A DNA stretch of 63,566 bases, counting the filler, from Guillardia theta CCMP2712 (lineage: Eukaryota > Protista > Cryptophyta): assembly GCF_000315625.1 (NCBI RefSeq). It is 4 parts of 4 records of this genome, joined end to end, with 100 filler letters (N's around TTAATTAATTAA, not from the genome) between each part and the next. Parts side by side here need not be neighbours in the genome. Positions count along the whole stretch, not along the records: positions 43,309 to 62,252 come from NW_005434667.1; 3 more parts are not named here. The stretch is one strand, 5' to 3'. Made by a program: the position numbers and the translations under genes. The notes under the pieces were generated by a model. The model did not search any database and was not told where the DNA came from. It saw only the letters and a list, made by a program, of their open reading frames with translations. This document shows, piece by piece, positions 43,309 through 62,252 of this stretch. The first letter of the stretch is position 1, and every line of letters starts with the position of its first letter.

Positions 43309-46300
43309 TTGATCGACCCTTCCTGTTTCGTGATATGTCGCCGTGGATTGCGGACCACACTTGGTTCCTGTTCTTCTCCTGTTTGGCCGAGGCTTGATAG
43401 TTTTCGTTTTGCTTCCTTCGGTATTCTTGTAGCTCCTCCTGTTCAGGGATCAGGTGTACTGTGAGTTGGACAATTATTCTCTCTTGTTCCGACTCCTTGC
43501 AGTAGACAATCAGGTCGTCTTGTGACTTCCTGAGGCTCCGATCGCCCGTCCTCCAGAAATTTGCAGCGTAGCATATTTCTGATCCTTTAGGTACCTTACC
43601 GACTAGCATGAAGCCGTCAGGGATTTCTTTCCTGAAGCAAGTTTGGTTCCATCCGATCAAGATTGTTCCAGACTCGCATGCGGCGTAGCTGAGGTATTGT
43701 TCCTGTTGGTCGATCCATATTATTTCACGTCGAACCTCGTCTTCCTGCAAGCTATCGGTTGCGGCCTGGATTGTCGGGTGATAGAGGGTGGGCCAGTTGC
43801 TGAACTGTTTTGTTTCAGCGAGCATCCCCAAGTGTTCTAGAAATTCGTACGACAGCGGAAGGCCTTGTTGTCTATCTCGAATTTCAGCCATGGCGGTGGT
43901 TAGATGTTCCCACCAAGCTTGCGAGTTGAGTGAGCTGTTATGTGTTTTGCTGATATACTTAGCAATTTGCAGTAGGATCTCTGTCTTCTCTGGGTTCTTG
44001 GCTCCATCGTCATCTTCTTTCCTCGCAAATGGCGCCGAGCGAAGGGAAGGTTCAGCTTCTTTGATGTCTTGTTCTTGGCCCGTGTGACTTCTGGGCCGGT
44101 CCATGATTGCTATGTCGCCCTTGATTTTGAAACTTTCCTTACCTTTTAGGATTAGGTGTTCCTGTTGATCCAGATTGCCTAGTAGTTTAGCCATGAGGGA
44201 TCTTGTGTTTGCATGAGCTGGGTGTGGCCTTCTCTCTTCTGCTGCTTCCCGATGCTTTTTGGATGTCTCCTCCCGGTCCTCCTCTGATTGCGGGTGTGAC
44301 TTTCGTTTTCGGGTTGTAGCACTATCCTGCGAGGCAACCTCTCGTCTTTTCCTCTTTGTTCCTGATGCTCTGTTGACGCTGCTTACCCAGATGACATTTT
44401 CTTGTAGCAGTTGCATTACAATCCCCTCCGCCTCCTCGCGTTGCCTTGGGAAAGGCCAGAGCTTCCTTGGCAAATGCAGTTCTTCGTCAGCGATAGGTCG
44501 TATATTGCGTAGCAAGGAGAATTGGAGTTTCGGGAGTTGCCTCCATAAAGCTTGGAAGGTCGTCCAGCCTTGTGGTCTGTCGCTGTCGTTCAAGTTTGCC
44601 ACCATATCCTCCATCCTATGAAGGAGGGAGATGCTTCCAGGTAGGTGACCTGCTTCTATGTGGGCCCAGCTGATCCTCGTGTTTAGTTTTTCCGCCAGCC
44701 AGACTGCTAAAGCTTCGGGTCCCCGCACCACATCACGCTCCATAGTTCGAAAATTCATTTCTCTTTGGAGCTCGAGGATTGTTTGGCATCCCCATTCCGC
44801 AAACCAGTTTCTGAGTTTAGATATCAGTCTATCTTGGGATGTCTCCACCTTGCTTACTATTCACTTCTCGTTCGATGTATCGTAGCGCTGCTCGCCCTAG
44901 GATTGGGGCAGGATGAGGGACCTGCAGCCCTCCATTCTCTGTTGGCAGGTAGAATATACCATTTCCCTGTACTTTTGCTCAGTCCTAACGCTTGNNNNNN
45001 NNNNNNNNNNNNNNNNNNNNNNNNNNNNNNNNNNNNNNNNNNNNNNNNNNNNNNNNNNNNNNNNNNNNNNNNNNNNNNNNNNNNNNNNNNNNNNNNNNNN
45101 NNNNNNNNNNNNNNNNNNNNNNNNNNNNNNNNNNNNNNNNNNNNNNNNNNNNNNNNNNNNNNNNNNNNNNNNNNNNNNNNNNNNNNNNNNNNNNNNNNNN
45201 NNNNNNNNNNNNNNNNNNNNNNNNNNNNNNNNNNNNNNNNNNNNNNNNNNNNNNNNNNNNNNNNNNNNNNNNNNNNNNNNNNNNNNNNNNNNNNNNNNNN
45301 NNNNNNNNNNNNNNNNNNNNNNNNNNNNNNNNNNNNNNNNNNNNNNNNNNNNNNNNNNNNNNNNNNNNNNNNNNNNNNNNNNNNNNNNNNNNNNNNNNNN
45401 NNNNNNNNNNNNNNNNNNNNNNNNNNNNNNNNNNNNNNNNNNNNNNNNNNNNNNNNNNNNNNNNNNNNNNNNNNNNNNNNNNNNNNNNNNNNNNNNNNNN
45501 NNNNNNNNNNNNNNNATTGCCTAGAGAGGATGCATAGCACCAAGTTGGCCAGTTGTGGGCTACTTGCTCCACCTTGAGGCAGCCCGATCATTAGAGGTAT
45601 TTTCCCTGTGTTGAACTCGTTTGTTTGTATTTGCAGTTCGACTCCACTGTTGCAGGCTATCACAGTTCTAATGTCCTCAGGATGGAAGCCTAGGCTGTTC
45701 ATTGCCTGCTCGACCACCTCGATTGCCACATTGTTAAAGAAGTTCGCAAAGTCCAGGTACAAGAGAATGAGGGACGTTTTGGCCTCTTCTGCTTCTTCTA
45801 CGATCGAGATCAGTCGATGAGCCTGCCGACTTGTGCTTCTGCCTGGACGGAACCCCTCCTGGAAGTTTGTGAGGACGTTATTTGCTTCTACTGTCTTACT
45901 CAGACGATGCGCCAGGATTGCCTGAACCAGCCGAGTAAGCGTTGACATGACGCATATAGGCCGCATGTTTTCGAGAATGTGACAGAATTGATTTTTTGGC
46001 AGGAGGCGTACTCTCGCTGTCTTGTTGAGAACCTCAGCTTTGCCTTCTAGGGCTGCATTGACTAACTTGCCAACTTCCTCTCGGCATGCTGGTGGCAGCG
46101 CCCGCAGCACTTCGTTCGAAATGAGGTCAAGTCCTGCAGCCTTTCGTCTCGGCGCCGAGGCGAGCCAGACGTCAATCTCTCCCGGTGCCAGGGGTCTGGT
46201 GATTTCCTGTTGTTGTCTCCTTGAAAGCTGCACCCCCTCAGGCGGTGTGATCCGTCTTGGGGCCACGGTTGTGAACGACTTACATTTTGTGCAGTACGGG

Positions 46301-49300
46301 GTCATCCCTCCCCCTCCGATGGTCTCGTCGCTTGAGTCAGCCAAGGGGAGCATACATCCGATGTTTGAGCATTTTGAGCAGGTCCCTTGTTTCGTGCATG
46401 CGTTGACGCTGAAGAAGAATCGTGTATGGTCCGCGTCCTCAAGCTCTCTAACCTTCTGCATTGGGAGATGATCCGTGAGATCACGGTATCCTGCTATCTC
46501 CCATGTTGTTTTATCCCATTTGAGGATCTTTTCATCTTCCGACATCAGTCCGAGGTGTATGCCTCCTCCATTCCTGTCGTCTCCCTCAAACATCCGCTCG
46601 ATCCCAATCATCAGTTGCTGGTTTGCACTCCAAAATGCTCTAACACCCCTCGTGTCTTCGCTAGATAGGGTTGCTTCGAGTTGGTTGATGAGCTCGTCGG
46701 CATTGTCGACTATCTTGCCGAGCAGTCTAAGAGCCAAGCCTTTGTGGCAACGAAGGGAGTTAGGGTGTTTTTTCTTGATGTCTTGACTTATCATCGGTTC
46801 TTTGGGAGTGAAATCATTCTTGCGTCCCATTGCATTCTGGGATTCACGGCTGCCTACCGTGCCTAGCCGTGTTTGCTGCTGTTGGCAGATCTCTTGGAAA
46901 ACTTCGTTGTTTTGTTCTTCACATATCGTTCTGAACCTCTCGATCTTAGTTCGCAATTCTCTTTGTAATGTAGCTTCCGTAGGTACACCAGTCGCTGGGC
47001 TTTGCTGTGATGCTTCCCTAAGTTTAGTCCGCAAGTTGCGGATCGATCTCTTCAAATCCATTTGTTCTTTGTTCGAATGTCGCCTCCCTCCCTTTCTGAT
47101 TTTCACCTCCTTTAGTGGTAGAGAGTTGGCGAGCATCTCACAAATGTTACATTCTTGCGCCTTAGCTCGCATGTCTCGTATGTTTGCATCTAGTTGTTGC
47201 GCCCATTCGATCTTCTTCTCCTCCCACGAATCGCGATCCAGCACCCATCTGCTTTTAGGGGTTTCCCCCTTCTTCTGTCGTGAATTCATCTGATGCACTT
47301 CTACTCGTGGGATTAGCTGCGTCTCCTCGGACGTGAACTTGGTGTGTACTTGCACCACCAGGGCTCTGTGATCAACTGCTCCCCCTATCACACAGCCGTC
47401 GACCGTCCACGATTGAAGGGAGATGTTGGGAAAGTTGTCCTCGTCACTTGGGGGGTGAATAGCGAGAACTGCGTCGAGTTTGGCTTCTATCAGTTCTTGT
47501 TTGTACCATGTTGAGAAGGTAAATGTTGTCCCAGTCTCGCTGATCTGTTCATATGAGAGTGTACGGTGTGCGGAAAGGTCTGCCAGGAATTTCTCGAATC
47601 TCTCATCTGCTTTTGCGGTGATAGATGAGGGGGAATATCCTCTCCGCATTGGTGTTGTTGTGTTGGTTCTTGCTGCATTAAAGTCTCCGGCTATGATGTG
47701 TGTCTCTCTCGTTCCCAGAGCGAGGTGTAGCAGCTCTGCCCACAGTTCCCCTTGCTCTCGAATCGCATTTTCCGCAGGTACCTGATGGAGGTTTGTGACT
47801 AAGAAAGAGTTTTTCCCTGTTCCGACTTTGATCGAAAACACTCGGTTTCGATATTTCTTTTCTTTGTTGCACGCCTGGTGAGCGGCAGGGGAGGGTGACG
47901 GCGACAGGGCCGCATGTACCAGCGTTACCAACCTCAGGTCTCCTTTCCCCTTCTTCGCATTGATCTTTGCAGGCCCCAGGAAGATTCTGTAGCAGGCCCA
48001 GTTCTCCTTGATCATCTTCCTCAATTTGTTCTCGTCGCGGGCCGAGACCCTTACCTCTTGTAGTAGCACAACCCCAGGTTGGAAGGACTGGATTAAGTAT
48101 GCGAGGATGTGCTTGAGAACAAAGTGATTGCAACCATTCACATTTTGTGAGATGAGGAAACCTGGGTCTGAACTTTTTCGATGCATCTGCGCCCAATCAT
48201 TGCCCCTTTGCTCCTCCTGCCTTTTCCCCCTCCGCTCCTTCCCTCTCTGGGAGGTTTTCTCTCCTGAGTGTGCATTCTCCTCCATTTCCTCACCAAAAAG
48301 TCTTGGTTGGGGCTTCGTGGTGGTCGCCTGCCGCTGGATTGCGATCGGCTGTACCTTCTCCTCAGGCTTTGCCGTCGAGGTCATCGGCCGCTGGATTGCG
48401 TTTGGCTGTACCTCCTCCTCAAGCTTTGTCGTCGAGGTCATCAGCCGCTGGATTGCGTTCGGCTGTACCTCCTCCTCCGGCTTTGTCGTCGATTTCAAGC
48501 TCTCTTGCACCCTCGCCTTCTTCGGCAGAGATCGCAGAATTACCTGGGCCGTTTCCTCCATCTTCTCCAGATGGGTGAGAGCTGCAATCAGTTGTGTTCT
48601 GGTTTGCCTCAGCCATTCTTGCGGAAGTCTTAGTCTTGTCCTCGTTTCCATCGTTGCTAGCCAGTCTTGATTTGTCTCGCAGAGCAGTAGGGTGTGAAGG
48701 ATAGCGAACACTCCGCAGTTGAAGTTATCTTCCTGTTGGAAGGCTGAGCACCACTGTATCTGCCATGGGGCATTGGTCTGATCGTCAAAGATGTGTTCGA
48801 TCACTCCGATTGTCAGCTCAGCCATTTCTCTTGCTCCTTTTGCGTGCTCCCCCGTTGTTACAAGATTCCTCGCTCCCTCGATCCCTCGTGGGTCCCTCGT
48901 TGTGCTCGTTCTGTCCTCGCAGAGGGGGTCCAATATGTACGCGCATCGCCGATCATATCTTAATGCAATTAGAATCCAGTGGTTGCTGTGGATGATAGTT
49001 GGAAACAGGAAGGTGTGTTGCTCATCTCTCAAGCTGCTGAGGTGAAATCTGTTCCCGACTCTCAAGCGGGACGCCTCGTCTCGCAGACTGGATATTACCC
49101 TTGGCAAGAAGATGATGTTCCGCGTTTGCTGGTCCTCGTGGGCTCTCCCTTTGCGTACCATGTGTATTGCTCGTCCTCCTTGAAGAGCCTTGCTCATCTC
49201 ATTGAGAGTAACTTCGATCATGTTCTCGCATAAAAATCCGCTTACTCCTCGATTGTTCAGGGCAGTGATGCCAAATTCCTTGTCGCCTCGTTTGTCTGAC

Positions 49301-49437
49301 CATGGGATCTCCTCGATCCAATCAAAAAAATACAGTGTTCTATCTACATGTTGCGTTTCCTTTGAAACCGTTTCCATCTCCCCCCCTTGCCTACTCCCGG
49401 CACTCCCCCCTTCCTCCTCCCTTCCTCCTCCTGTCAT
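43309..49437 (-). pseudogene. ORF2 of copy 1 (Ulp1-APE-RT...), frameshifted and truncated
   Basis: Same protein as 54000-61439, with single-base insertions near 44838 and 44963 relative to copy 3 and an N gap at 44995-45516. These may be consensus errors. Confidence 0.8.
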
Positions 49438-49446
49438 GATTCGGTT

Positions 49447-51508
49447 TTAGAGTTGAGAGGCAACCTCTCCCTCTTGGTTGCCACTCTCCTCTTCCATCTC
49501 CAGTCCCATCTCCTCCTCTGCCTTGCTCAAGAGAAACTCAATTTCGTCTCCCGAGCCAACGCTGCCTTGGTAGGTTAGCGTAGCTGTGAGAACTAATTTA
49601 TTCAGGGCAAGAAACAACAGGTCAGTTCGAAATTCTTTTTGTTGTTTCTCCCCTCCTCTCCCTGTTGCTTTTGCAAAGGCTCCCTGGCGTCTTCTTGATG
49701 CTACCGTCTCCCACGCATGCTGCTCGCTTACTCTTGCAATCTTACTCTTCAAAACTTGCATGTCGTCGTCCTGGGTTGCCGAGGATGATTCCGCCCATTC
49801 CTTCAGCGTCGGAAAACATGCATTTCCAGGAGATGACAAGCTGTCGTACAGGCCGACGATGGCTCCATCGAGCCTGAGTTTGCAAGCTTGGTTTTCTGCA
49901 CTCTGTCCCTGGTTGACAGTCTCCTCTAGAACTTTGTAGATGTCTTCGAGGACCACGTTTGCCTCTGGTTCTGGGATGTTGATCTCATTCTCGATCCGTT
50001 CGAGATCTACCTGTGCCCACAGAGGCTCCGTGGGGGGTTCTGTAGCGATCGCTTCCCAAAGGTTGGCACTGCCTGGCTCTAGGAGAAGAAGTTTCCCCGC
50101 CCTGTCCCATGGCGCAAAGGACCTGAGTATGTCGATCGCCGTTTCTTTTTCTGAGAAGCTGAGCACTAGATGTTCACCGTTCCAGCTGTTGGTCTCGACA
50201 TCTTCCTTCGAGGAGATCTTGACGATGTGCTCAGCCGCTGACTCCTTCCAGCTCGCCACGATCCGTCTCGATCTGTTCAGCTTCCTCTCTGGTGAACCTT
50301 CCCTTCTGTGCTTTACTCTTGACCAGCACCTCATAGGTCACTCTTCGTGGTACTGCTCCTAGCGCGTCGGGCAAGAAGTCCAACCTAATTGGATGCTGTC
50401 TCGTTACCCTGGTGATTGCACTAACCTGAGTAGTGAACCATTTGAGGATCTTTTCATCTTCCGACATCAGTCCGAGGTGTATGCCTCCTCCATTCCTGTC
50501 GTCTCCCTCAAACATCCGTAGCGTGGTGCTCAGGACGTCCGTCGAAGAGCATCTCGCAATCCAATCGATCTCTCTTCCTTGTCGTATCTCGTCCACTCCG
50601 GCTGCTGCGAAAGTGCGTTTGTTGGGCTGACCTTGAGGTCTCCTCTTCGTCTTGACCTCTAGCTGCATGCCCGCTTCCGGCTGCACCTCCAACACAGCTA
50701 TTCCTTGTTGCAGCAGGTGTTGACGATAGATCTCCGTAATCCCAGCTGAGTTCATGCCATTCATCTTGAGGAGGTGAGAGAACTCAGCTAGGGCCCCCGC
50801 CTTGCCAGAGTGCTTATCCTTCTGTGGCCTTATCTTGAAGGAGCAAGGATGCTTCGAATGCGCGTTCACCGCGCGGATCATCTTTCCGTCGATCCTGAAG
50901 TTCGTCTGTCCTTTCCACAGCAGTTCTGCTGCGTCGTTCAATTGGAGTGTTGCCACGACTGGGATTTCATCCACTGTCGGAATCAAATCTTTCTTGATCG
51001 GGGCTCTCCACGAGATGCATTTCTTGCCCTGCTCCTCGTGCACCAAGAGTCCTTGATCCTTCAACTTCTCACACAGTACCTCAACTTGTTTTATGTACTG
51101 GGTAGGAACTCCGAGGATAGCCATGGTAATCAGTTTACCACTCTCGGGGGACGCTCCTGAAGCATCGATGCAGGCACTCTTGTCTAGTACCTCCTGTTTG
51201 TCTGCGTTCCATGCAGAGACATACCACGACTGTCCTTCTTCCCCCCATTCTTTGATGGCATCCTCCTGGCTCCTGACTTCAGCATGTTTGCAGGTCTGTC
51301 GAATGGCTTCGGCTAAGGCGTTCATCGAGACTTCCTTGGACTGCAAGGCTCTGCCTGTCCTGCTCTGAGGGTACTGCCTGACGAAGTGTTCCAATCTTCG
51401 GATCAGCTCTCCTAGCGAAGGTGCTGAAGGCGTCGTGTCCTTGTTTAGGAACTGGGAAACTCGGACACGAGCAATCTGTTTCCTTTCCTCTTTGGATAGA
51501 TACCACAT
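49447..51508 (-). CDS. ORF1 of copy 1, split into two overlapping frames (50231-51514 and 49447-50334)
   Basis: N-terminal half is homologous to the 52007-52824 ORF; C-terminal half is nearly identical to 61449-62252. A +1 frame change lies within 50231-50337. First ATG at 51508. Confidence 0.75.
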
Positions 51509-51595
51509 GATCAAACAACCGTTTCTGCACAGAAAAATATCCTGTTCAGCACCCTAGCTCGCAGGGATCCCCTCAAACTGCAGGGGAGGAGAGCA

Positions 51596-51817
51596 TGTCT
51601 GTTACTCCAGCGGTCTGTCTGTTACTCCAGCGGTCTGTCTGTTACTCCAGCGGTCTGTCTGTTACTCCAGCGGTCTGTCTGTTACTCCAGCGGTCTGTCT
51701 GTTACTCCAGCGGTCTGTCTGTTACTCCAGCGGTCATGTCTGTTACTCCAGCGGTCTGTCTGTTACTCCAGCGGTCTGTCTGTTACTCCAGCGGTCTGTC
51801 TGTTACTCCAGCGGTCT
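51596..51817. repeat. 20-bp tandem array (tgtctgttactccagcggtc), about 11 copies, at the 5' end of copy 1
   Basis: Seen directly; one unit has an extra A (cggtcatgtc at 51731). Confidence 0.95.
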
Positions 51818-51902
51818 CCTAAACCCTAAACCCTAAACCCTAAACCCTTAACCTTAACCCTAAACCCTAAACCTAAACCCTTAACCCTAATCCTAAACCC
51901 TA
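51818..51902 (-). repeat. Telomeric tract (TTTAGGG)n with variant units
   Basis: CCCTAAA units on the + strand, several degenerate, followed by tagtag. Confidence 0.95.
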
Positions 51903-53373
51903 GTAGNNNNNNNNNNNNNNNNNNNNNNNNNNNNNNNNNNNNNNNNNNNNNNNNNNNNNNNNNNNNNNNNNNNNNNNNNNNNNNNNNNNNNNNNNNNNNN
52001 NNNNNNAGCGGCTGGAGTTGGACCGCTGCAAGGGACTGGCGCAGCAGCTGATAGCGATAGACGGCAGCTATCTCAGCCGTTGTCATGCCGCCCAAGGTTA
52101 GCAGGTGAGTCAGCTCTGCCAAGCTGCCCCCTTTGCCCCAGGGTCCTCTCTTGGCTCGAATCTTGAAAGATCGATCGTGCACGATGCTCACATGTACAGC
52201 TGTGAACTTGCGACCATCGATCGCGAAGTCCTCTCTTCCCTGCCAGAGCTTCTCCGCTTGTGCATTGCGGAGGAAGGAAACAGTCACCGGGATCTCCTCA
52301 GCACTCGCTATCTCGGGTCTATACGGAGCCTTCCACATGATTGCTTTACTCTCTTGCACTGAGTCTACGATCAGTCCGATCTCTTCAAATTTCTTCTTCA
52401 GCTTTTCTTCATGGTTGACATACACCGAGGAGATGCCCAGGAGAGTCATGGAGATGAAGGAAGTCACCTCGTTGCCTGCTGAGGCGGTGTATGTCTCGAC
52501 CTTCTCCTTCTTGGCTTCTTCAATCTGCTGCATAAACCACTCTCTGGATGCGTCACTCCATCCAGTCATCGCTTCTTGCAGAAACTCACGTCGTGCCTGC
52601 TGACATGTCGAGCGGATGGCTTCTGCGATAGCGTCGGGGGTGCATCCCTCCACAGCCTTGCAAGCCTGGGCTGTCCTGCTGTTCGGATAACGCTTCGCGA
52701 AGCTCTTCACCCTCTCGACGAGATCAGCTTCGAGGACAGAGGCATCCACAATTCCGCTCTGCGTGTATTGGCATGATCTCCGATACAGCAGGTTGCGAAC
52801 ATTTTCATCATACTGAAGAACCATACTTAGAAAGCTATTTGAAGTATACAAACCTCTCGCTTGCAGCTTCCTTGGCGCCCTGGCGGCTTCCCCTACACCT
52901 GACGAGGAGCCATGCTGCCGAAAATAACGGCGCCTGCCGAAAATAACGGCGCCTGCCGAAAATAACGGCGCCTGCCGAAAATAACGGCGCCTGCCGAAAA
53001 TAACGGCGCCTGCCGAAAATAGCGGCGCCTGCCGAAAATAACGGCGCCTGCCGAAAATAACGGCGCCTGCCGAAAATAACGGCGCCTGCCGAAAATAACG
53101 GCGCCTGCCGAAAATAACGGCGCCTGCCGAAAATAACGGCGCCTGCCGAAAATAACGGCGCCTGCCGAAAATAACGGCGCCTGCCGAAAATAACGGCGCC
53201 TGCCGAAAATAACGGCGCCTGCCGAAAATAACGGCGCCTGCCGAAAATAACGGCGCCTGCCGAAAATAACGGCGCCTGCCGAAAATAACGGCGCCTGCCG
53301 AAAATAACGGCGCCTGCCGAAAATAACGGCGCCTGCCGAAAATAACGGCGCCTGCCGAAAATAACGGCGCCTG
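51901..53373 (-). mobile_element. Non-LTR retrotransposon copy 2 (subfamily II); most of the body presumably lies in the N gap 51907-52006
   Basis: Tail junction ccc-tagtag on the left; divergent ORF1 and a 19-bp 5' array on the right, abutting a telomeric tract. The tail and ORF1 could belong to different copies. Confidence 0.8.
52007..52824 (-). CDS. ORF1 N-terminal part, subfamily II (partial)
   Basis: Aligns by eye with copy 1 ORF1: YPNSRTAQA/YPQSRTGRA, AIAEAIRSTC/ALAEAIRQTC, LWQGREDFAIDGR/LWKGQTNFRIDGK, GSLAELTHLL/GALAEFSHLL. Confidence 0.85.
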
Positions 53374-53374
53374 C
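52915..53374. repeat. 19-bp tandem array (gccgaaaataacggcgcct), about 24 copies, at the 5' end of copy 2
   Basis: Seen directly; nearly perfect, with one A>G variant near 53022. Confidence 0.97.
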
Positions 53375-53425
53375 TAAACCCTAAACCCTAAACCCTAAAC
53401 CCTAAACCCTAAACCCTAAACCCTA
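53374..53425 (-). repeat. Telomeric tract (TTTAGGG)n, 6 full units plus partials
   Basis: Perfect CCCTAAA units on the + strand. Confidence 0.97.
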
Positions 53426-53455
53426 GTAGTAGTAGTAGTAGTAGTCGATTTTATT
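53424..53455 (-). terminator. Element 3' end: AATAAA signal followed by a (CTA)7 tail
   Basis: Minus strand reads ...ctAATAAAatcga-ctactactactactactacta-gggtttaggg. Confidence 0.8.
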
Positions 53456-53999
53456 AGAATGCTAGAATAGTCGCATCGGGTACCTTCCCGGTCTAGTCTA
53501 GTCTAAATGGGTTCTGACGCTTGGCAGAGCGGCCCTTCTTGGATGGCCCGTTGTGGCATCCAGGGTTCTATCGCTGTTCCGCTTTTTCTGTTGTTTCCAT
53601 AGTCCTCCGTTCCGAGCCGCCGGTGCCGTATCTCCTCCGGGCCCGGGTTGACGGTTTCAGTGTAACCGTCCACCTTTCTATTTTTTGCGCTAAGTCCATG
53701 TCCCTTCCCCGCCTGCCGCCTGTGAAGCTTCCCCGTCAGTCTGTCCTTGTTGACCTTTCCCCTGTCGTCATCCATCTGTCTCCTGTGTCCTTGCCCCTTC
53801 CTTGCCATGTTGGTTGTTTTTCGCCTATGAGGCTTCACCTTCGGTCTGTCCGTTGACCGTTGCCCTTTCGTCTTCATCTGTCTTCTGTGTCCTTGCCCCT
53901 TCCCAGCCATGCTGATCCTGGTTGCTAGCTTTTGAGGCTTCCCTTGTGATCTGTCCTCGTTGATATTTACCCCTTCATCTTCCAACCATCTTATATCCT

Positions 54000-56900
54000 T
54001 CATGCTTGTTCTCTGTTGGTCGTGTCTCCTCGTCTCCTTGAGGTCCACAGCATGTGTTGCACTTCGAGCAGCTGGATGACTATCTTGGTCATGGCTCTGT
54101 CAATCATATCCTCGTCCATGAGCAAGTTCCGGAAATTTGTGGTCCATTCCCGCTCCATAATACTGCCTCTCACTCCTGCAATGAACGTGGCTTGTATGAC
54201 CTCTGTGTTGTCGCTCCTACTTGTCATCTCTGCCCGCAGTGCTGCATATTTCTGTTCTTTCTCCTGAAACTTTGCTTTCAGGTTTGCCAGACTGCTTCCC
54301 TCGCCCGTGAACTCTGAAGTTCTTGCTATCTCCACCAGCACAATGCGATTGCTTCCTCTGAAGTAGCAGAGCCCATCTGGTATAAGATTGCCGTGCTCTG
54401 GTGCAGTCAGTCCTAGCCCTGTCATAGAGTTGATTGGCGTTTGCCACCAACTCTCCTGTTCAACACTTTTCTTCTTCCAGCTTTCTGTCAGGCATCCCTT
54501 GATTGTCTCCATTACTCTGTTGTGTGCCAAAGCGATCATGAGCTCAAATTCTTTGCAGGCTAGCTGGATATGCACCCAGCTTTCTTCCCTGCCTTCGCAC
54601 CATGGGCAACAGGGGGATGTCGTCTTCTTCCACTGGAACAGCTTTTTCCTCGTAGGTGCTGACCAGGTAATAGCTTGGATGGCTGTCCGAAGTACTGATC
54701 CTCGACACCTCTGTAAGGCTCGACCTAGGATCCTTCTGCCCACTTGTGGTTCCAGGAGAAAGGTTTCCGTCAAGGTAAGGGGGGCTTCTTTCCTCCTCAG
54801 TTCCAGTTGTTCTTCTCTGATTATCTTATCCCATATTTTCAGTCGATCCATCCCCGGCTTGAAGTTCTCTTCGTCTGCAATGCAGAATCCCAAGTCGCTG
54901 TCGATGAGGGCCCTTTCCCACGTGGAGGAGAAGGAGGATTTTCCCTTGCGAGCTTCCTCTGCAGCTTCTTGCACTACGGTGTGGTCTGCGATCAGAGAGA
55001 GGTTGATCTCAATGCCTTCCCGCTGAAATTTGCTCAGGCATTCCTGCAGTCTTCCTGCCAAGTCGTATACGAGCTCGTCTTCATACTGCATGGTAGACCA
55101 TCTGAGGGTGTCCGTAAGAAAGCGATGCATTCGGGTTGATTTAAAGAGGACGAAGATTTTCCTGATTGTTTTCTGTTTGCCTCTTTGTTCCCAAATCGCT
55201 TGTAGGAGTATGCAGAGTGCGATGGTATGTGCTCTGATGACGCTACATTTTCCGTGTATCTTGATCGCTCCGCGTTCCTGCTCTCCTTCCTTTTCTTGCG
55301 TGCTGTATCCTATCGACATTGATCGACCCTTCCTGTTTCGTGATATGTCGCCGTGGATTGCGGACCACACGTGGTTCCTGTTCTTCTCCTGTTTGGCCGA
55401 GGCTTGATAGTTTTCGTTTTGCTTCCTTCGGTATTCTTGTAGCTCCTCCTGTTCAGGGATCAGGTGTACTGTGAGTTGGACAATTATTCTCTCTTGTTCC
55501 GACTCTTTGCAGTAGACAATCAGGTCGTCTTGTGACTTCCTGAGGCTCCGATCGCCCGTCCTCCAGAAATTTGCAGCGTAACATATTTCTGATCCTTTAG
55601 GTACCTTACCGACTAGCATGAAGCCGTCAGGGATTTCTTTCCTGAAGCAAGTTTGGTTCCATCCGATCATGATTGTTCCGGACTCGCATGCGGCGTGGCT
55701 GAGGTATTGCTCCTGTTGGTCGATCCATATTATTTCACGTCGAACCTCGTCGTCCTGCAAGCTGTCTGTTGCGGCCTGGATTGTCGGGTGATAGAGGGTG
55801 GGCCAGTTGCTGAACTGTTTTGTTTCAGCGAGCATCCCCAAGTGTTCTAGAAATTCGTACGACAGCGGAAGGCCTTGTTGTCTATCTCGGATTTCAGCCA
55901 TGGCGGTGGTTAGATGTTCCCACCAAGCTTGCGAGTTGAGTAAGCTGTTGTGTTTTTTGCTGATATGCTTAGCAATTTGCAGTAGGATCTCTGTCTTCTC
56001 TGGGTTCTTGGCGCCATCTTCATCTTCTTTCCTCGCAAATGGTGCCGAGCGAAGGGAAGGTTCGGCTTCTTTGATGTCTTGTTCTTGGCCCGTGTGACTT
56101 CTGGGCCGGTCCATGATTGCTATGTCGCCCTTGATTTTGAAACTTTCCTTACCTTTTAGGATAAGGTGTTCCTGTTGATCCAGATTGCCTAGTAATTTAG
56201 CCATGAGGGATCTTGTGTTTGCATGAGCTGGGTGTGGCCTTCTCTCTTCTGCTGCTTCCCGATGCTTTTTGGATGTCTCCTCCCGGTCCTCCTCTGATTG
56301 CGGGTGTGACTTTCGTTTTCGGGTTGTAGCACTATCCTGTGTGACAGCCTCTCGTCTTTTCCTCTTTGTTCCTGATGCTCTGTTGACGCTGCTTACCCAG
56401 ATGACATTTTCTTGTAGCAATTGCATTACGATCCCCTCCGCCTCCTCGCGTTGCCTTGGGAAAGGCCAGAGCTTCCTTGGCAAATGCAGTTCTTCGTCCG
56501 CGATAGGTCGTACATTGCGTAGCAAGGAGAATTGGAGTTTCGGGAGTTGCCTCCATAAGGCTTGGAAGTTCGTCCAGCCCTGTGGTCTGTTACAGTCGTT
56601 CAAGTTTGCCACCATATCCTCCATCCTATGAAGGAGGGAGATGCTTCCAGGTAGGTGACCTGCTTCTATATGGGCCCAGCTGATCCTCGTGTTTAGTTTT
56701 TCCGCCAGCCAGACTGCTAAAGCTTCGGGTCCCCGCACCACATCCCGCTCCATAGTTCGAAAATTCATTTCTCTTTGGAGCTCGAGCATTGTTTGACACC
56801 CCCATTTTACGCACGAGTTTCTGAGTTTAGATATCAGTCTATCTTGGATGTCTCCACCATGCTTACTATTCACTTCTCGTTCGATGTATCGTAACGCTGC

Positions 56901-59900
56901 TCTCCCTAGGATTGGGGCAGGATGAGGGACCTGCAGCCCTCCATTCTCTGTTGGCAGGTAGAATATACCATTCCCTGTACTTTTGCTTAGGCCTAACGCT
57001 TTTTTAAAAGCTCGTATCCACAGTTGATCTAATTCTTGTAGGTCTCGCCAAGTCCATCCAGTCATGACTGCGGAGTAGCGAAAGACGTTGAGAATTCCAA
57101 CTTTCACCAGGTAAAATTTTTGCGCAGGAGTATAACTCGACGAGCTGATATTGTTGATCAGTTCTTTGGTTTCTTCAAAGACGTATGCTCGTTCTCCCCA
57201 AGTGAAAGGGCAGCCCTTTATTCTTCGTCTTTCTTCCTTCCACAGAGAGATGCGATAGCCGAGATATTTGAACGGTTTAGTAGCCGGTAGGGCTTCGACA
57301 GGTTCCCCCATGACCGTTATTTTGTTCGCACCAGGAACCTCTCCCTTGCGAGCATAGTCGAAGCTGGTTATCTCTGATTTCTTATTGTTGATTTGCAGTC
57401 CTGACCATTTGCAGAAGGAATCCACCACTGCTACCAACTCTCGCATTTCTTTCATCGTGTGTGCGATGAGTACCATGTCATCGGCGAAGGACAGGTTGTT
57501 TGTTGTTCCTGTGCTGCACTTGTCCAATTGCCTAGAGAGGATGCATAGCACCAAGTTGGCCAGTTGTGGGCTACTTGCTCCACCTTGTGGCAGCCCGATC
57601 ATTAGAGGTATTTTCCCTGTGTTGAACTCGTTTGTTTGTATTTGCAGTTCGACTCCACTGTTGCAGGCTATCACAGTTCTAATGTCTTCAGGATGGAAGC
57701 CTAGGCTGTTCATTGCCTGCTCGACCACCTCGATCGCCACATTGTTAAAGAAGTTCGCAAAGTCCAGGTACAAGAGAATGAGGGACGTTTTGGCCTCTTC
57801 TGCTTCTTCTACGATCGAGATCAGTCGATGAGCCTGCCGACTTGTGCTTCTGCCTGGACGGAACCCCTCCTGGAAGTTTGTGAGGACGTTATTTGCTTCT
57901 ACTGTCTTACTCAGACGATGCGCCAGGATTGCCTGAACTAGTCGAGTAAGCGTTGACATGACGCATATTGGCCGCATGTTTTCGAGAATGTGACAGAATT
58001 GATTTTTTGGCAGGAGGCGTACTCTCGCTGTCTTGTTGAGAACCTCAGCTTTGCCTTCTAGGGCTGCATTGACTAACTTACCAACTTCCTCTCGGCATGC
58101 TGGTGGCAGCGCCCGCAGCACTTCGTTCGAAATGAGGTCAAGTCCTGCAGCCTTTCGTCTCGGCGCCGAGGCGAGCCAGACATCAATCTCTCCCGGTGCC
58201 AGGGGTCTGGTGATTTCCTGTTGTTGTCTCCTTGAAAGCTGCACCCCCTCAGGCGGTGTGATCCGTCTTGGGGCCACGGTTGTGAACGACTTACATTTTG
58301 TGCAGTACGGGGTAATCCCTCCCCCTCCGATGGTCTCGTCGCTTGAGTCAGCCAAGGGGAGCATACATCCGATGTTTGAGCATTTTAAGCAGGTCCCTTG
58401 TTTCGTGCATGCGTTGACGCTGAAGAAGAATCGTGTATGGTCCGCGTCCTCTAGCTCTCTAACCTTCTGCATTGGGAGATGATCCGTGAGATCACGGTAT
58501 CCTGCTATCTCCCATGTTGTTTTATCCGATTCTTCTAGTGCTACAATTGCTTTCGTGATTGTGTTTGCAGGTAGCAGTGATAGAAAGATCCAGTCATCTG
58601 TCCCTTCTCGCTCGATCCCAATCATCAGTTGCTGGTTTGCACTCCAAAATGCTCTAACGCCCCTCGTGTCTTCGCTAGATAAGGTTGCTTCGATTTGGTT
58701 GATGAGCTCGTCGGCATTGTCGACTATCTTGCCGAGCAGTCGAAGAGCCAAGCCTTTGTGGCAACGAAGGGAGTTAGGGTGTTTTTTCTTGATGTCTTGA
58801 CTTATCATCGGTTCTTTGGGAATGAAATCATTCTTGCGTCCCATTGCATTCTGGGATTCACGGCTGCCTACCGTGCCTAGCCGTGTTTGCTGCTGTTGGC
58901 AGATCTCTTGGAAAACTTCGTTGTTTTGTTCTTCACATATCGTTCTGAACCTCTCGATCTTAGTTCGCAATTCTCTTTGTAATGTAGCTTCCGTAGGTAC
59001 TCCAGTCGCTGGGCTTTGCTGTGATGCTTCCCTAAGTTTAGTCCGCAAGTTGCGGATCGATCTCTTCAAATCCATTTGTTCTTTGTTCGAATGTCGCCTC
59101 CCTCCCTTTCTGATTTTCACCTCCTTTAGTGGTAGAGAGTTGGCGAGCATCTCACAAATGTTACATTCTTGCGCCTTAGCTCGCATGTCTCGTATGTTTG
59201 CATCTAGTTGTTGCGCCCATTCGATCTTCTTCTCCTCCCACGAATCGCGATCCAGCACCCATCTGCTTTTAGGGGTTTCCCCCTTCTTCTGTCGTGAATT
59301 CATCTGATGCACTTCTACTCGTGGGATTAGCTGCGTCTCCTCGGACGTGAACTTGGTGTGTACTTGCACCACCAGGGCTCTGTGATCAACTGCTCCCCCT
59401 ATCACACAGCCGTCGACCGTCCACGATTGAAGGGAGATGTTTGGAAAGTTGTCCTCGTCACTTGGGGGGTGAATAGCGAGAACTGCGTCGAGTTTGGCTT
59501 CTATCAGTTCTTGTTTGTACCATGTTGAGAAGGTAAATGTTGTCCCAGTCTCGCTGATCTGTTCATATGAGAGTGTACGGTGTGCGGAAAGGTCTGCCAG
59601 GAATTTCTCGAATCTCTCATCTGCTTTTGCGGTGATAGATGAGGGGGAATATCCTCTCCGCATTGGTGTTGTTGTGTTGGTTCTTGCTGCATTAAAGTCT
59701 CCGGCTATGATGTGTGTCTCTCTCGTTCCCAGAGCGAGGTGTAGCAGCTCTGCCCACAGTTCCCCTTGCTCTCGAATCGCATTTTCCGCAGGTACCTGAT
59801 GGAGGTTTGTGACTAAGAAAGAGTTTTTCCCTGTTCCGACTTTGATCGAAAACACTCGGTTTCGATATTTCTTTTCTTTGTTGCACGCCTGGTGAGCGGC

Positions 59901-61439
59901 AGGGGAGGGTGACGGCGACAGGGCCGCATGTACCAGCGTTACCAACCTCAGGTCTCCTTTCCCCTTCTTCGCATTGATCTTTGCAGGCCCCAGGAAGATT
60001 CTGTAGCAGGCCCAGTTCTCCTTGATCATCTTCCTTAATTTGTTCTCGTCGCGGGCCGAGACCCTTACCTCTTGTAGTAGCACAACCCCAGGTTGGAAGG
60101 ACTGGATTAAGTATGCGAGGATGTGCTTGAGAACAAAGTGATTGCAACCATTCACATTTTGTGAGATGAGGAAACCTGGGTCTGAGCTTTTTCGATGCAT
60201 CTGCGCCCAATCATTGCCCCTTTGCTCCTCCTGCCTTTCCCCCCTCCGCTCCTTCCCTCTCTGGGAGGTTTTCTCTCCTGATTGTGCATTCTCCTCCATT
60301 TCCTCACCCAGATGTCTTGGTTGGGGCTTCGTGGAGGTCGCCTGCCGCTGGATTGCGATCGGCTGTACCTCCTCCTCAAGCTTTGTCGTCGAGGTCATCA
60401 GCCGCTGGATCGCGTGTGGCTGTACCTCCTCCTCAAGCTTTGTCGTCGAGGTCATCAGCCGCTGGATTGCGTTCGGCTGTACCTCCTCCTCCGGCTTTGT
60501 CGTCGAGGTCATCAGCCGCTGGATTGCGTTCGGCTGTACCTCCTCCTCCGGCTTTGTCGTCGATGTCAAGTTCTCTTGCACCCTCGCCTCCTTCGGCAGA
60601 GATCGCAGAATTACCTGGGCCGTTTCCTCCATCTTCTCCAGATGGGTGAGAGCTTCCATCGTTGCTAGCCAGTCTTGATTTGTCTCGCAGAGCAGTAGGG
60701 TGTGAAGGATAGCGAACACTCCGCAGTTGAAGTTATCTTCCTGTTGGAAGGCTGAGCACCACTTTACCTGCCATGGGGCGTTGGTCTGATCGTCAAAGAT
60801 GTGTTCGATCACTCCGATTGTCAGCTCAGCCATTTCTCTTGCTCCGTGCTCCCCCGTTGTTGCAAGATTCCTCGCTCCCTCGATCCCTCGTGGGTCCCTC
60901 GTTGTGCTCGTTCTGTCCTCGCAGAGAGGGTCCAATATGTACGCGCATCGCCGATCATATCTTAATGCAATTAGAATCCAGTGGTTGCTGTGGATGATAG
61001 TTGGAAACAGGAAGGTGTGTTGCTCATCTCTCAAGCTGCTGAGGTGAAATCTGTTCCCGACTCTCCAGCGGGACGCCTCGTCTCGCAGACTGGATATTAC
61101 CCTTGGCAAGAAGATGATGTTCCGCGTTTGCTGGTCCTCGTGGGCTCTCCCTTTGCGTACCATGTGTATTGCTCGTCCTCCTTGAAGAGCCTTGCTCATC
61201 TCATTGAGAGTAACTTCGATCATGTTCTCGCATAAAAATCCGCTTACTCCTCGATTGTTCAGGGCAGTGATGCCAAATTCCTTGTCGCCTCGTTTGTCTG
61301 ACCATGGGATCTCCTCGATCCAATCAAAAAAATACAGTGTTCTATCTACATGTTGCGTTTCCTTTGAAACCGTTTCCATCTCCCCCCCTTGCCTACTCCC
61401 GGCACTCCCCCCTTCCTCCTCCCTTCCTCCTCCTGTCAT
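54000..61439 (-). CDS. ORF2 polyprotein, 2479 aa: Ulp1/C48 protease, AP endonuclease, Cys cluster, reverse transcriptase, degenerate RNase H, CCHC + restriction-like endonuclease
   Basis: Protease NHWIL..LDPL..QQEDNFNCGVF; APE SQNVNG, LQE, GDFN, KLD, DH; RT RPI, QEGFRPGRST, LDFANFF, GLPQGGASSP, FADD, KYLG; C-terminal CPWC-x8-H-x4-C, AHN, PD..VEIA, EKEQKY. Confidence 0.95.
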   Translation of the reverse strand: MTGGGREEEGGSAGSRQGGEMETVSKETQHVDRTLYFFDWIEEIPWSDKRGDKEFGITALNNRGVSGFLCENMIEVTLNEMSKALQGGRAIHMVRKGRAHEDQQTRNIIFLPRVISSLRDEASRWRVGNRFHLSSLRDEQHTFLFPTIIHSNHWILIALRYDRRCAYILDPLCEDRTSTTRDPRGIEGARNLATTGEHGAREMAELTIGVIEHIFDDQTNAPWQVKWCSAFQQEDNFNCGVFAILHTLLLCETNQDWLATMEALTHLEKMEETAQVILRSLPKEARVQENLTSTTKPEEEVQPNAIQRLMTSTTKPEEEVQPNAIQRLMTSTTKLEEEVQPHAIQRLMTSTTKLEEEVQPIAIQRQATSTKPQPRHLGEEMEENAQSGEKTSQRGKERRGERQEEQRGNDWAQMHRKSSDPGFLISQNVNGCNHFVLKHILAYLIQSFQPGVVLLQEVRVSARDENKLRKMIKENWACYRIFLGPAKINAKKGKGDLRLVTLVHAALSPSPSPAAHQACNKEKKYRNRVFSIKVGTGKNSFLVTNLHQVPAENAIREQGELWAELLHLALGTRETHIIAGDFNAARTNTTTPMRRGYSPSSITAKADERFEKFLADLSAHRTLSYEQISETGTTFTFSTWYKQELIEAKLDAVLAIHPPSDEDNFPNISLQSWTVDGCVIGGAVDHRALVVQVHTKFTSEETQLIPRVEVHQMNSRQKKGETPKSRWVLDRDSWEEKKIEWAQQLDANIRDMRAKAQECNICEMLANSLPLKEVKIRKGGRRHSNKEQMDLKRSIRNLRTKLREASQQSPATGVPTEATLQRELRTKIERFRTICEEQNNEVFQEICQQQQTRLGTVGSRESQNAMGRKNDFIPKEPMISQDIKKKHPNSLRCHKGLALRLLGKIVDNADELINQIEATLSSEDTRGVRAFWSANQQLMIGIEREGTDDWIFLSLLPANTITKAIVALEESDKTTWEIAGYRDLTDHLPMQKVRELEDADHTRFFFSVNACTKQGTCLKCSNIGCMLPLADSSDETIGGGGITPYCTKCKSFTTVAPRRITPPEGVQLSRRQQQEITRPLAPGEIDVWLASAPRRKAAGLDLISNEVLRALPPACREEVGKLVNAALEGKAEVLNKTARVRLLPKNQFCHILENMRPICVMSTLTRLVQAILAHRLSKTVEANNVLTNFQEGFRPGRSTSRQAHRLISIVEEAEEAKTSLILLYLDFANFFNNVAIEVVEQAMNSLGFHPEDIRTVIACNSGVELQIQTNEFNTGKIPLMIGLPQGGASSPQLANLVLCILSRQLDKCSTGTTNNLSFADDMVLIAHTMKEMRELVAVVDSFCKWSGLQINNKKSEITSFDYARKGEVPGANKITVMGEPVEALPATKPFKYLGYRISLWKEERRRIKGCPFTWGERAYVFEETKELINNISSSSYTPAQKFYLVKVGILNVFRYSAVMTGWTWRDLQELDQLWIRAFKKALGLSKSTGNGIFYLPTENGGLQVPHPAPILGRAALRYIEREVNSKHGGDIQDRLISKLRNSCVKWGCQTMLELQREMNFRTMERDVVRGPEALAVWLAEKLNTRISWAHIEAGHLPGSISLLHRMEDMVANLNDCNRPQGWTNFQALWRQLPKLQFSLLRNVRPIADEELHLPRKLWPFPRQREEAEGIVMQLLQENVIWVSSVNRASGTKRKRREAVTQDSATTRKRKSHPQSEEDREETSKKHREAAEERRPHPAHANTRSLMAKLLGNLDQQEHLILKGKESFKIKGDIAIMDRPRSHTGQEQDIKEAEPSLRSAPFARKEDEDGAKNPEKTEILLQIAKHISKKHNSLLNSQAWWEHLTTAMAEIRDRQQGLPLSYEFLEHLGMLAETKQFSNWPTLYHPTIQAATDSLQDDEVRREIIWIDQQEQYLSHAACESGTIMIGWNQTCFRKEIPDGFMLVGKVPKGSEICYAANFWRTGDRSLRKSQDDLIVYCKESEQERIIVQLTVHLIPEQEELQEYRRKQNENYQASAKQEKNRNHVWSAIHGDISRNRKGRSMSIGYSTQEKEGEQERGAIKIHGKCSVIRAHTIALCILLQAIWEQRGKQKTIRKIFVLFKSTRMHRFLTDTLRWSTMQYEDELVYDLAGRLQECLSKFQREGIEINLSLIADHTVVQEAAEEARKGKSSFSSTWERALIDSDLGFCIADEENFKPGMDRLKIWDKIIREEQLELRRKEAPLTLTETFLLEPQVGRRILGRALQRCRGSVLRTAIQAITWSAPTRKKLFQWKKTTSPCCPWCEGREESWVHIQLACKEFELMIALAHNRVMETIKGCLTESWKKKSVEQESWWQTPINSMTGLGLTAPEHGNLIPDGLCYFRGSNRIVLVEIARTSEFTGEGSSLANLKAKFQEKEQKYAALRAEMTSRSDNTEVIQATFIAGVRGSIMEREWTTNFRNLLMDEDMIDRAMTKIVIQLLEVQHMLWTSRRRGDTTNREQA

Positions 61440-61448
61440 GATTCGGTT

Positions 61449-62252
61449 TTAGAGTTGAGAGGCAACCTCTCCCTCTTGGTTGCCACTCTCCTCTTCCATC
61501 TCCAGTCCCATCTCCTCCTCTGCCTTGCTCAAGAGAAACTCAATTTCGTCTCCCGAGCCAACGCTGCCTTGATAGGTTAGCGTAGCTGTGGAAACTACTT
61601 TATTCAGGGCAAGAAACAACAGGTCAGTTCGAAATTCTTTTTGTTGTTTCTCCCCTCCTCTCCCTGTTGCTTTTGCAAAGGCTCCCTGGCGTCTTCTTGA
61701 TGCTACCGTCTCCCACGCATGCTGCTCGCTTACTCTTGCAATCTTACTCTTCAAAACTTGCATGTCGTCGTCCTGGGTTGCCGAGGATGATTCCGCCCAT
61801 TCCTTCAGCGTCGGAAAACATGCATTTCCAGGAGATGACAAGCTGTCGTACAGGCCGACGATGGCTCCATCGAGCCTGAGTTTGCAAGCTTGGTTTTCTG
61901 CACTCTGTCCCTGGTTGACAGTCTCCTCTAGAACTTTGTAGATGTCTTCGAGGACCACGTTTGCCTCTGGTTCTGGGATGTTGATCTCATTCTCGATCCG
62001 TTCGAGATCTACCTGAGCCCAAAGAGGCTCTGTAGGGGGTTCTGTAGCGATCGCTTCCCAGATGTTGGCACTGCCTGGCTCTAGGAGAAGAAGTTTCCCT
62101 GCCCTGTCCCATGGCGCAAAGGACCTGAGGATGTCAATCGCCGTTTCTTTTTCTGAGAAGCTGAGCACTAGATGTTCACCGTTCCAGCTGTTGGTCTCGA
62201 CATCTTCTTTCGAGGAGATCTTGACGATGTGCTCAGCCGCTGACTCCTTCCA
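61449..62252 (-). CDS. ORF1 C-terminal part, copy 3 (partial)
   Basis: Nearly identical to 49447-50250; open into the gap. Confidence 0.85.
   Translation of the reverse strand, partial: WKESAAEHIVKISSKEDVETNSWNGEHLVLSFSEKETAIDILRSFAPWDRAGKLLLLEPGSANIWEAIATEPPTEPLWAQVDLERIENEINIPEPEANVVLEDIYKVLEETVNQGQSAENQACKLRLDGAIVGLYDSLSSPGNACFPTLKEWAESSSATQDDDMQVLKSKIARVSEQHAWETVASRRRQGAFAKATGRGGEKQQKEFRTDLLFLALNKVVSTATLTYQGSVGSGDEIEFLLSKAEEEMGLEMEEESGNQEGEVASQL

Follow-up and report, generated by a model that had tools for sequence, protein, structure and literature searches.

Some retrotransposons encode two endonucleases, and the locus described here raises the question of which nuclease cuts which strand of the target. 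Dualen elements are thought to preserve an intermediate of LINE (long interspersed nuclear element) evolution, in which an APE-type endonuclease (APE) had been gained and the older restriction-like endonuclease (RLE) not yet lost. To our knowledge the role of each Dualen nuclease has never been tested, and the only active Dualen observed that we know of went to dispersed sites with very long duplications. The window analysed here is a stretch of 63,566 nt from the cryptophyte Guillardia theta CCMP2712 (GCF_000315625.1), of which positions 43309-62252 are an 18.9-kb piece from NW_005434667.1. On its minus strand, 54000-61439 is one uninterrupted open reading frame (ORF) of 2479 amino acids (aa), the intact ORF2 of copy 1 of a retrotransposon that we call element A. 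An earlier note on this DNA had seen catalytic motifs in both of its endonuclease domains, and had suggested that the two may share the work of insertion. Element A is very probably a Dualen/RandI-type non-LTR (non-long-terminal-repeat) retrotransposon, or LINE, whose insertion is specific to (TTTAGGG)n telomere repeats. The features of ORF2, with what each rests on in brackets, are as follows.

54000..61439, minus strand: ORF2 of copy 1, 2479 aa (open frame; Pfam; collinear relatives)
60660..61142, minus strand: Ulp1-like (C48) cysteine protease (Pfam PF02902 below threshold; invariant residues)
60329..60568, minus strand: in-frame tandem repeat of 57 nt (19 aa) in the spacer between protease and APE (4.2 copies in copy 1, 2.9 in copy 2)
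59364..60179, minus strand: APE-type endonuclease, aa about 421-692 (Pfam, profile and weak model; N430, E457, D581, N583, D651, D685, H686)
58281..58415, minus strand: cysteine cluster upstream of the reverse transcriptase (C1011, C1017, C1020, C1046 and C1049 invariant)
57249..58010, minus strand: reverse transcriptase, aa 1144-1397 (Pfam RVT_1; FADD at 1318-1321)
54930..55382, minus strand: RNase H-like region, aa about 2020-2170 (alignment with the RNase H of kin)
54030..54770, minus strand: CCHC zinc knuckle (54555-54608) and PD-(D/E)xK RLE (motifs, profile, fold)

ORF2 thus runs from the protease through the APE, the reverse transcriptase (RT), the RNase H-like region and the zinc knuckle to the RLE. 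It is collinear with two full-length relatives from other samples, P0001 (44% identity) and P0002 (43%), in which the motif residues of the protease, APE, RT and RLE are all invariant. The nearest library proteins share this architecture, and more distant kin have the same layout but a normal RNase H. Metagenomes of freshwater, lake, runoff and aquatic origin, in many different studies, contain sequence near-identical to 54200-60170, and a transcript fragment (P0006) of the marine microbial eukaryote transcriptome project (MMETSP) is 96% identical. The host appears to be a microbial eukaryote common in fresh water, one with short introns. The RT is matched by Pfam RVT_1 over aa 1144-1397 (E 4.2e-35); with the thumb included, R2 is the closer match (E 3.9e-23) and L1 ORF2p the more remote one (E 9e-14), which fits an intermediate position.

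At the C-terminus, a script run on the translation places CPWC-x8-H-x4-C at aa 2278-2295 (54555-54608), AHN at aa 2305-2307 (54519-54527), PD...E at aa 2354-2370 (54330-54380) and KEQKY at aa 2394-2398 (54246-54260). The earlier note had described this set of motifs in this order, and each stands where it was placed; its spacing of PD-x13-E was wrong, since 14 residues separate the D of PD from E2370 (PD-x14-E). Pfam zf-RVT matches weakly at aa 2259-2296. Relatives of the RLE numbered 95 among 1.8 billion representative proteins, and in an alignment of 29 members the four zinc ligands (C, C, H, C), PD, an R, and the K and Y of K..KY are invariant. A profile of 29 relatives found the C-terminal part of three R2 proteins in the PDB: R2Tg (E 1.4e-22), R2Pm (2.5e-20) and R2Bm (5e-5), the last being the protein with which the earlier note had proposed a comparison. 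In the alignment of profile and R2, CCHC falls on CCHC, AHN on RHN, PD on PD, E on the D of R2, and K..KY on K..KY. A search of the PDB with the single sequence gave no meaningful match, and R2 was reached only through the family profile. The AlphaFold model of the RLE (predicted local distance difference test, pLDDT, 93.6; predicted template modelling score, pTM, 0.91) has R2 structures as all of its top seven PDB matches (TM 0.64-0.70), followed by the cap-snatching PD-(D/E)xK endonucleases of segmented negative-strand RNA viruses; the region thus does model as the fold that had been supposed. By profile and predicted fold, the C-terminus is a true R2-type CCHC and PD-(D/E)xK nuclease. A search for related loci with a four-sequence alignment returned only the already known contig L002, and no further RLE copies.

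The upstream nuclease is a member of a different superfamily. The same script finds SQNVNG at aa 426-431 (60147-60164), LLQEV at aa 454-458 (60066-60080), GDFN at aa 580-583 (59691-59702), LDAV at aa 650-653 (59481-59492) and VDHRA at aa 684-688 (59376-59390), so that the N, E, GDFN, D and DH motifs noted earlier are all in place. Pfam Exo_endo_phos matches aa 426-609 with 33.2 bits (cut-off 24.5; E 5.9e-8). The comparison with the L1 endonuclease (EN) also held, a four-sequence profile matching L1 endonuclease structures at E 2.4e-5 with the N, the E, GDFN and the LD aspartate aligned; the C-terminal DH (D685, H686) is invariant but lies outside the span of this hidden Markov model alignment. 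A structure model, of low confidence, has matches that all belong to one superfamily, with L1 EN first and then TDP2, Mth0212, ExoIII, APE1 and R1Bm EN. Membership of the L1/APE1 superfamily is supported by these sequence comparisons.

The second half of the identification concerns the target. Around copy 1, the piece holds a head-to-tail array of elements and telomere repeats, with the following parts.

61449..62252, minus strand: ORF1 of copy 1, 3' part, cut by the piece edge (stop, 9-nt spacer, ORF2 ATG)
53424..53999, minus strand: 3' untranslated region of copy 1, with AATAAA and then a (CTA)7 tail at 53444-53424 (no poly(A))
53374..53423, minus strand: (TTTAGGG)7 telomere repeats adjoining the 3' tail of copy 1 (sequence)
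51901..53373, minus strand: element B, a second, related family, with a 5' array of a 19-mer x24 at 52915-53373; ends CTACTA
51818..51900, minus strand: about 12 telomere units, separating element B from copy 2 (of element A)
51596..51817, minus strand: 5' end of copy 2, an array of a 20-mer x11 directly after TTTAGG
49447..51514, minus strand: ORF1 of copy 2, split in two frames (427 aa, 295 aa)
43309..49437, minus strand: ORF2 of copy 2 (about 98% identity with copy 1), truncated ahead of the RLE by the piece edge

Read along the sense strand, the order is copy 1, (TTTAGGG)7, element B, about 12 telomere units and copy 2 from 51817. Two contigs from elsewhere repeat the pattern. L001 opens on a pair of 20-mers, and its closing (ATA)n runs straight into GGGTTTAGGGTTTAGG. 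In L002 the tail of one element is followed by three telomere units, then by a second, complete element, (ATA)n and at least 15 telomere units. Across these sources, all five 3' junctions (element A, element B, L001 once and L002 twice) read ...TA and then GGGTTTAGGG, while at each of the three 5' junctions the element comes after TTTAG or TTTAGG. Element A, element B and two relatives at about 44% identity thus all abut (TTTAGGG)n, with orientation and register the same throughout. In addition, a low-depth, diverged DNA contig of run X1 (55268-55349), from an independent data set, matches element A up to 55349 and continues in CCCTAAA repeats; it is a further copy, truncated at its 5' end, that sits in telomere repeats at another place in that genome. 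None of these 3' tails is poly(A): the window has (CTA)7, L001 and L002 both have (ATA)n, and L007 has (CAG)33. Telomere flanks on both sides, with site and orientation constant, are what distinguishes a telomere-specific LINE, and element A has them. The more distant kin L004-L009 have microsatellite tails and no telomere flanks, so telomere specificity belongs to the sub-lineage of element A. Its architecture also differs from that of the R1 clade, of which it is therefore not a member.

Both nucleases appear to have been maintained. Between L001 and L002 the ratio of non-synonymous to synonymous substitution rates (dN/dS) is 0.26 for the APE, 0.065 for the RT, 0.09 for the RNase H-like region and 0.11 for the zinc knuckle and RLE; it is below 1 in every domain, and near neutral (0.80) in the spacer between protease and APE. 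In the APE, copies 1 and 2 are separated by 3 synonymous changes and no non-synonymous one; for the RT the counts are 8 and 0, and the linkers are nearly neutral. This comparison within the window covers ORF2 up to the piece edge at which copy 2 ends, and the relatives were used for the RLE. Copy 2 is defective: besides the split ORF1, it has frameshifts (single-base indels) near 44838 and 44964, a rearranged segment contains a premature stop at about the equivalent of aa 968, and 44995-45515 is an N gap. Assembly errors could account for some of these defects. Degeneracy of one domain across copies, which the earlier note had allowed for, was found for neither: both nuclease domains keep their catalytic residues and, as the substitution ratios indicate, are under purifying selection in the relatives.

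How the two might act together can be considered from the orientation of the element. In target-primed reverse transcription, the 3'-OH of the nicked strand primes cDNA synthesis. The sense strand of element A is continuous with the G-rich strand, its 3' tail running into TTTAGGG units, and the primer would therefore be an internal nick in the C-rich strand rather than the chromosome's G-overhang. The earlier note had likewise suggested priming from the C-rich strand, and the orientation within (TTTAGGG)n agrees. A C-strand primer would also exclude end addition in the style of HeT-A/TART, and would explain why nucleases have been kept. The process may begin with recognition of telomeric duplex DNA by a ribonucleoprotein, after which one nuclease would nick the C-rich strand at CCC^, CCCT^ or CCCTA^, a position that is ambiguous over 2 nt because TA is shared with the tail. 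The freed 3'-OH would then prime reverse transcription on the (CUA)n tail of the RNA, and the G-rich strand would be cut at TTTAG(G)^, 2-4 bp away plus any multiple of 7. As to which enzyme makes which cut, there is roughly an even chance that priming is due to the APE, nicking the C-strand at its T/A step, and that the RLE makes the second-strand cut. The lean towards the APE as first cutter comes from TRAS1 and SART1, whose APE domains nick telomere repeats specifically (PMC7265360). The reverse assignment, with the RLE making the priming nick, is plausible because the arrangement of RT, thumb and RLE is R2-like. Joint action of both nucleases has been proposed before, to explain the target duplications of ~900 bp left by Dualen-4b_cRei (PMC9977147).

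Several observations weigh against the reading of element A as a telomere-specific Dualen that uses both nucleases. Its placement in Dualen/RandI is one that we infer from architecture and unnamed relatives, not from an RT tree, and the division of first- and second-strand cleavage between APE and RLE is likewise something that we infer. Target-site duplications are unreadable within the repeat, and the array, seen in a piece of 18.9 kb, may or may not lie at a true chromosome end. The position of Tyr115 in L1 (NIY) is occupied by His547 (NLH), which is invariant in the lineage of element A, and the structure model of the APE, built from four sequences only, has a low pLDDT of 56.5. In the RNase H-like region the catalytic Glu has given way to His (to Asn in P0001 and P0002) and an Asp is also replaced (TDS to ST), so that the region differs in both respects from its kin. 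The spliced RNA seen from the locus is antisense, and sense-strand transcription is not among it.

Some of these points feed the strongest rival explanation, namely that only one nuclease is active in integration and the other has become a structural or DNA-binding module. Both cuts might fall to the RLE, as they do in R2, the APE then serving in target binding only, or the roles might be reversed. With a His where L1, APE1 and their kin carry a conserved Tyr, full activity of the APE is not certain, and the R2-like arrangement of RT, thumb and RLE recalls an element in which, as is generally held, the RLE makes both cuts. That this lineage can retain a conserved dead domain is suggested by the RNase H-like region, which has no Pfam match but aligns with the RNase H of P0026, P0078 and P0033; its catalytic residues are lost and yet its dN/dS is low, as would be expected of a dead domain that apparently persists because it serves a structural role. 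The same region supplies the counter-argument, for its catalytic residues have gone, whereas in the nucleases N, E, D, N, D and DH on the one side and PD, E and K on the other are invariant across lineages of ~44% identity. We regard a single active nuclease as unlikely, although it retains appreciable weight.

An improbable explanation is that the association with telomeres arose by end addition or recombination, or by tandem duplication of a block, and not by sequence-specific endonucleolytic insertion. The model here is Drosophila HeT-A/TART, or Penelope-like elements without an endonuclease. Segmental duplication is possible for copies 1 and 2 of element A, which are about 98% identical at a distance of ~12 kb, and the telomere tracts that separate the elements, of 7 and about 12 units, are short. 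The explanation is opposed by the orientation, which needs a C-strand primer that a chromosome end presumably does not offer, by a junction register that two families and three independent sources have in common, by a 5'-truncated copy joined to telomere repeats, and by the conservation of both nucleases. It is scarcely credible that the dual-nuclease ORF is an artefact of assembly or nesting that fused an APE-type LINE with an RLE-type element, since, despite assembly gaps in a repeat-rich region, the frame stays open over 7.4 kb without a break. An independent data set of 2011 has DNA contigs over 54200-56100 and 56348-60170 that show 3-5 differences, the architecture is collinear in P0001 and P0002 and in more distant kin, contigs L001 and L002 span APE to RLE, and dN/dS is below 1 in every domain.

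The remaining parts of element A are less directly tied to the question of the two nucleases. The protease is matched by Pfam PF02902 (Peptidase_C48) at aa 144-257 with E 0.0026 and 18.1 bits, just below the cut-off of 20.7 bits; the matches are stronger in relatives, and H153-W154, D170, Q233 and C239 are invariant with P0001 and P0002. The 57-nt repeat in the spacer that follows (60329-60568, against 48330-48492 in copy 2) encodes a 19-aa unit resembling TSTTKPEEEVQPNAIQRLM. The cysteine cluster upstream of the RT has conserved columns and no Pfam match, and is possibly a zinc or DNA-binding module.

Both parts of the split ORF1 of copy 2 are homologous to the single ORF1 of L001 and L002 (712 and 713 aa). 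In copy 1 (61437-61451) the ORF1 stop, a 9-nt spacer and the ORF2 ATG follow one another, and in L001 (2249-2256) and L002 (2439-2446) the two frames overlap as TAATG (a UAAUG stop-start). The silkworm element SART1 reportedly has the same UAAUG overlap and uses it for coupled translation. Element B, most of which is hidden by a 100-N assembly gap (51907-52006), has a CTA-type tail like that of element A and an ORF1 33% identical to that of element A, so that two related families share the site. The elements start directly after the telomere repeat with tandem units of 19-20 nt, numbering 11 at 51596-51817, 24 at 52915-53373, two in L001 (1-40) and one in L002 (about 197-216). These arrays may be promoters, or a product of 5'-end formation.

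Contigs of runs X10 and X12, which we guess to be RNA, cover 54200-58570 on the plus strand with at least 15 splice joints, all GT..AG; the introns are mostly 41-75 nt long, and DNA runs are without these joints. As the GT..AG joints are all on the plus strand, the spliced RNA is antisense to the element ORF. An antisense protein-coding gene was considered and rejected, since splicing shortens the open frames, the longest being 168 codons, and the RNA looks non-coding. Drosophila TART is also said to have spliced antisense RNA.

Among known systems, Dualen/RandI is the closest. An APE and an RLE in one protein are its defining trait (Kojima and Fujiwara 2005, as cited in PMC4640811 and PMC9977147), and Dualen was first described in Chlamydomonas reinhardtii, according to the same citing papers (Kojima and Fujiwara 2005). 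The novelty that the earlier note implied for the pairing was thus overstated: because this pairing defines Dualen/RandI, a headline of two nucleases is not new, and their joint action had also been raised (PMC9977147). Element A resembles Dualen/RandI in having an APE upstream of the RT and a C-terminal CCHC and RLE in one protein, in its cysteine protease, in a microsatellite 3' tail in place of poly(A), and in an RT between the R2-like and L1-like types; at the place of the RNase H it has a region that aligns with one. A search of PMC6338049 for the type of protease that Dualens carry gave nothing. RandI tails are likewise microsatellites and not poly(A) (PMC3747384). It differs in that its lineage is confined to (TTTAGGG)n, whereas described Dualens insert widely, Dualen-4b_cRei for instance leaving long target duplications at dispersed sites (PMC9977147). 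It differs also in the lost catalytic residues of the RNase H, in a separate ORF1 of ~700 aa, and in the 5' tandem 19-20-mers.

What appears to be new, and was not found described, is a conserved Dualen lineage specific to telomere repeats. Full-text literature searches gave no description of a telomere-specific Dualen, with Repbase reports and subscription journals outside their reach, so that an earlier description is possible. A 2023 list of telomere-associated retrotransposons names SART/TRAS, GilM/GilT, Zepp1, MoTeR1, Tx1-1_ACar, Athena and HeT-A/TART/TAHRE, and no Dualen (PMC10088271). The full proposal is of an undescribed, conserved Dualen-type lineage specialised on TTTAGGG telomeres, with at least two families in one genome and relatives in other aquatic eukaryotes, in which the APE and RLE may each cut one defined strand of the 7-bp repeat, as the cleanest natural system for studying their division of labour. 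Taken whole, it is tentative, its chance falling a little short of even. If it is true, both cut sites can be read from the junctions, and the system would bear on how the APE replaced the RLE in LINE evolution. Because the target is fixed, simple and repetitive, (TTTAGGG)n and (CCCTAAA)n offer defined substrates for both strands, and assays could assign the roles; element A would be a good experimental system for asking which nuclease does which cut.

The RLE end of the protein compares with R2 (R2Bm, R2Tg, R2Pm), with homology of zinc knuckle and PD-(D/E)xK domain in sequence and fold, and the RT with its thumb is likewise nearest to R2. R2 has no APE or protease, finds its 28S rDNA target through N-terminal zinc-finger and Myb domains, and makes both cuts with its RLE alone. 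MoTeR of Magnaporthe oryzae, a CRE-like element, also bears an RLE and lies in telomere repeats, as cited in PMC4640811 and PMC10088271. It is set apart by the lack of an APE, a fungal TTAGGG target and a different clade. In its choice of target, element A resembles SART1 and TRAS1 of Bombyx mori (R1 clade), which insert precisely in telomere repeats, form head-to-tail arrays and share the niche as two families, and SART1 has the same orientation, with the sense strand continuous with the G-rich strand. SART1 and TRAS1 differ in carrying an APE only, without RLE or protease, in their poly(A) tails and in their TTAGG target, and since the clades are unrelated the choice of target would be convergent. 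To the telomere-specific retrotransposons (SART/TRAS, MoTeR, GilM/GilT, Tx1, HeT-A/TART), element A would add a protist/algal case with a new protein architecture.

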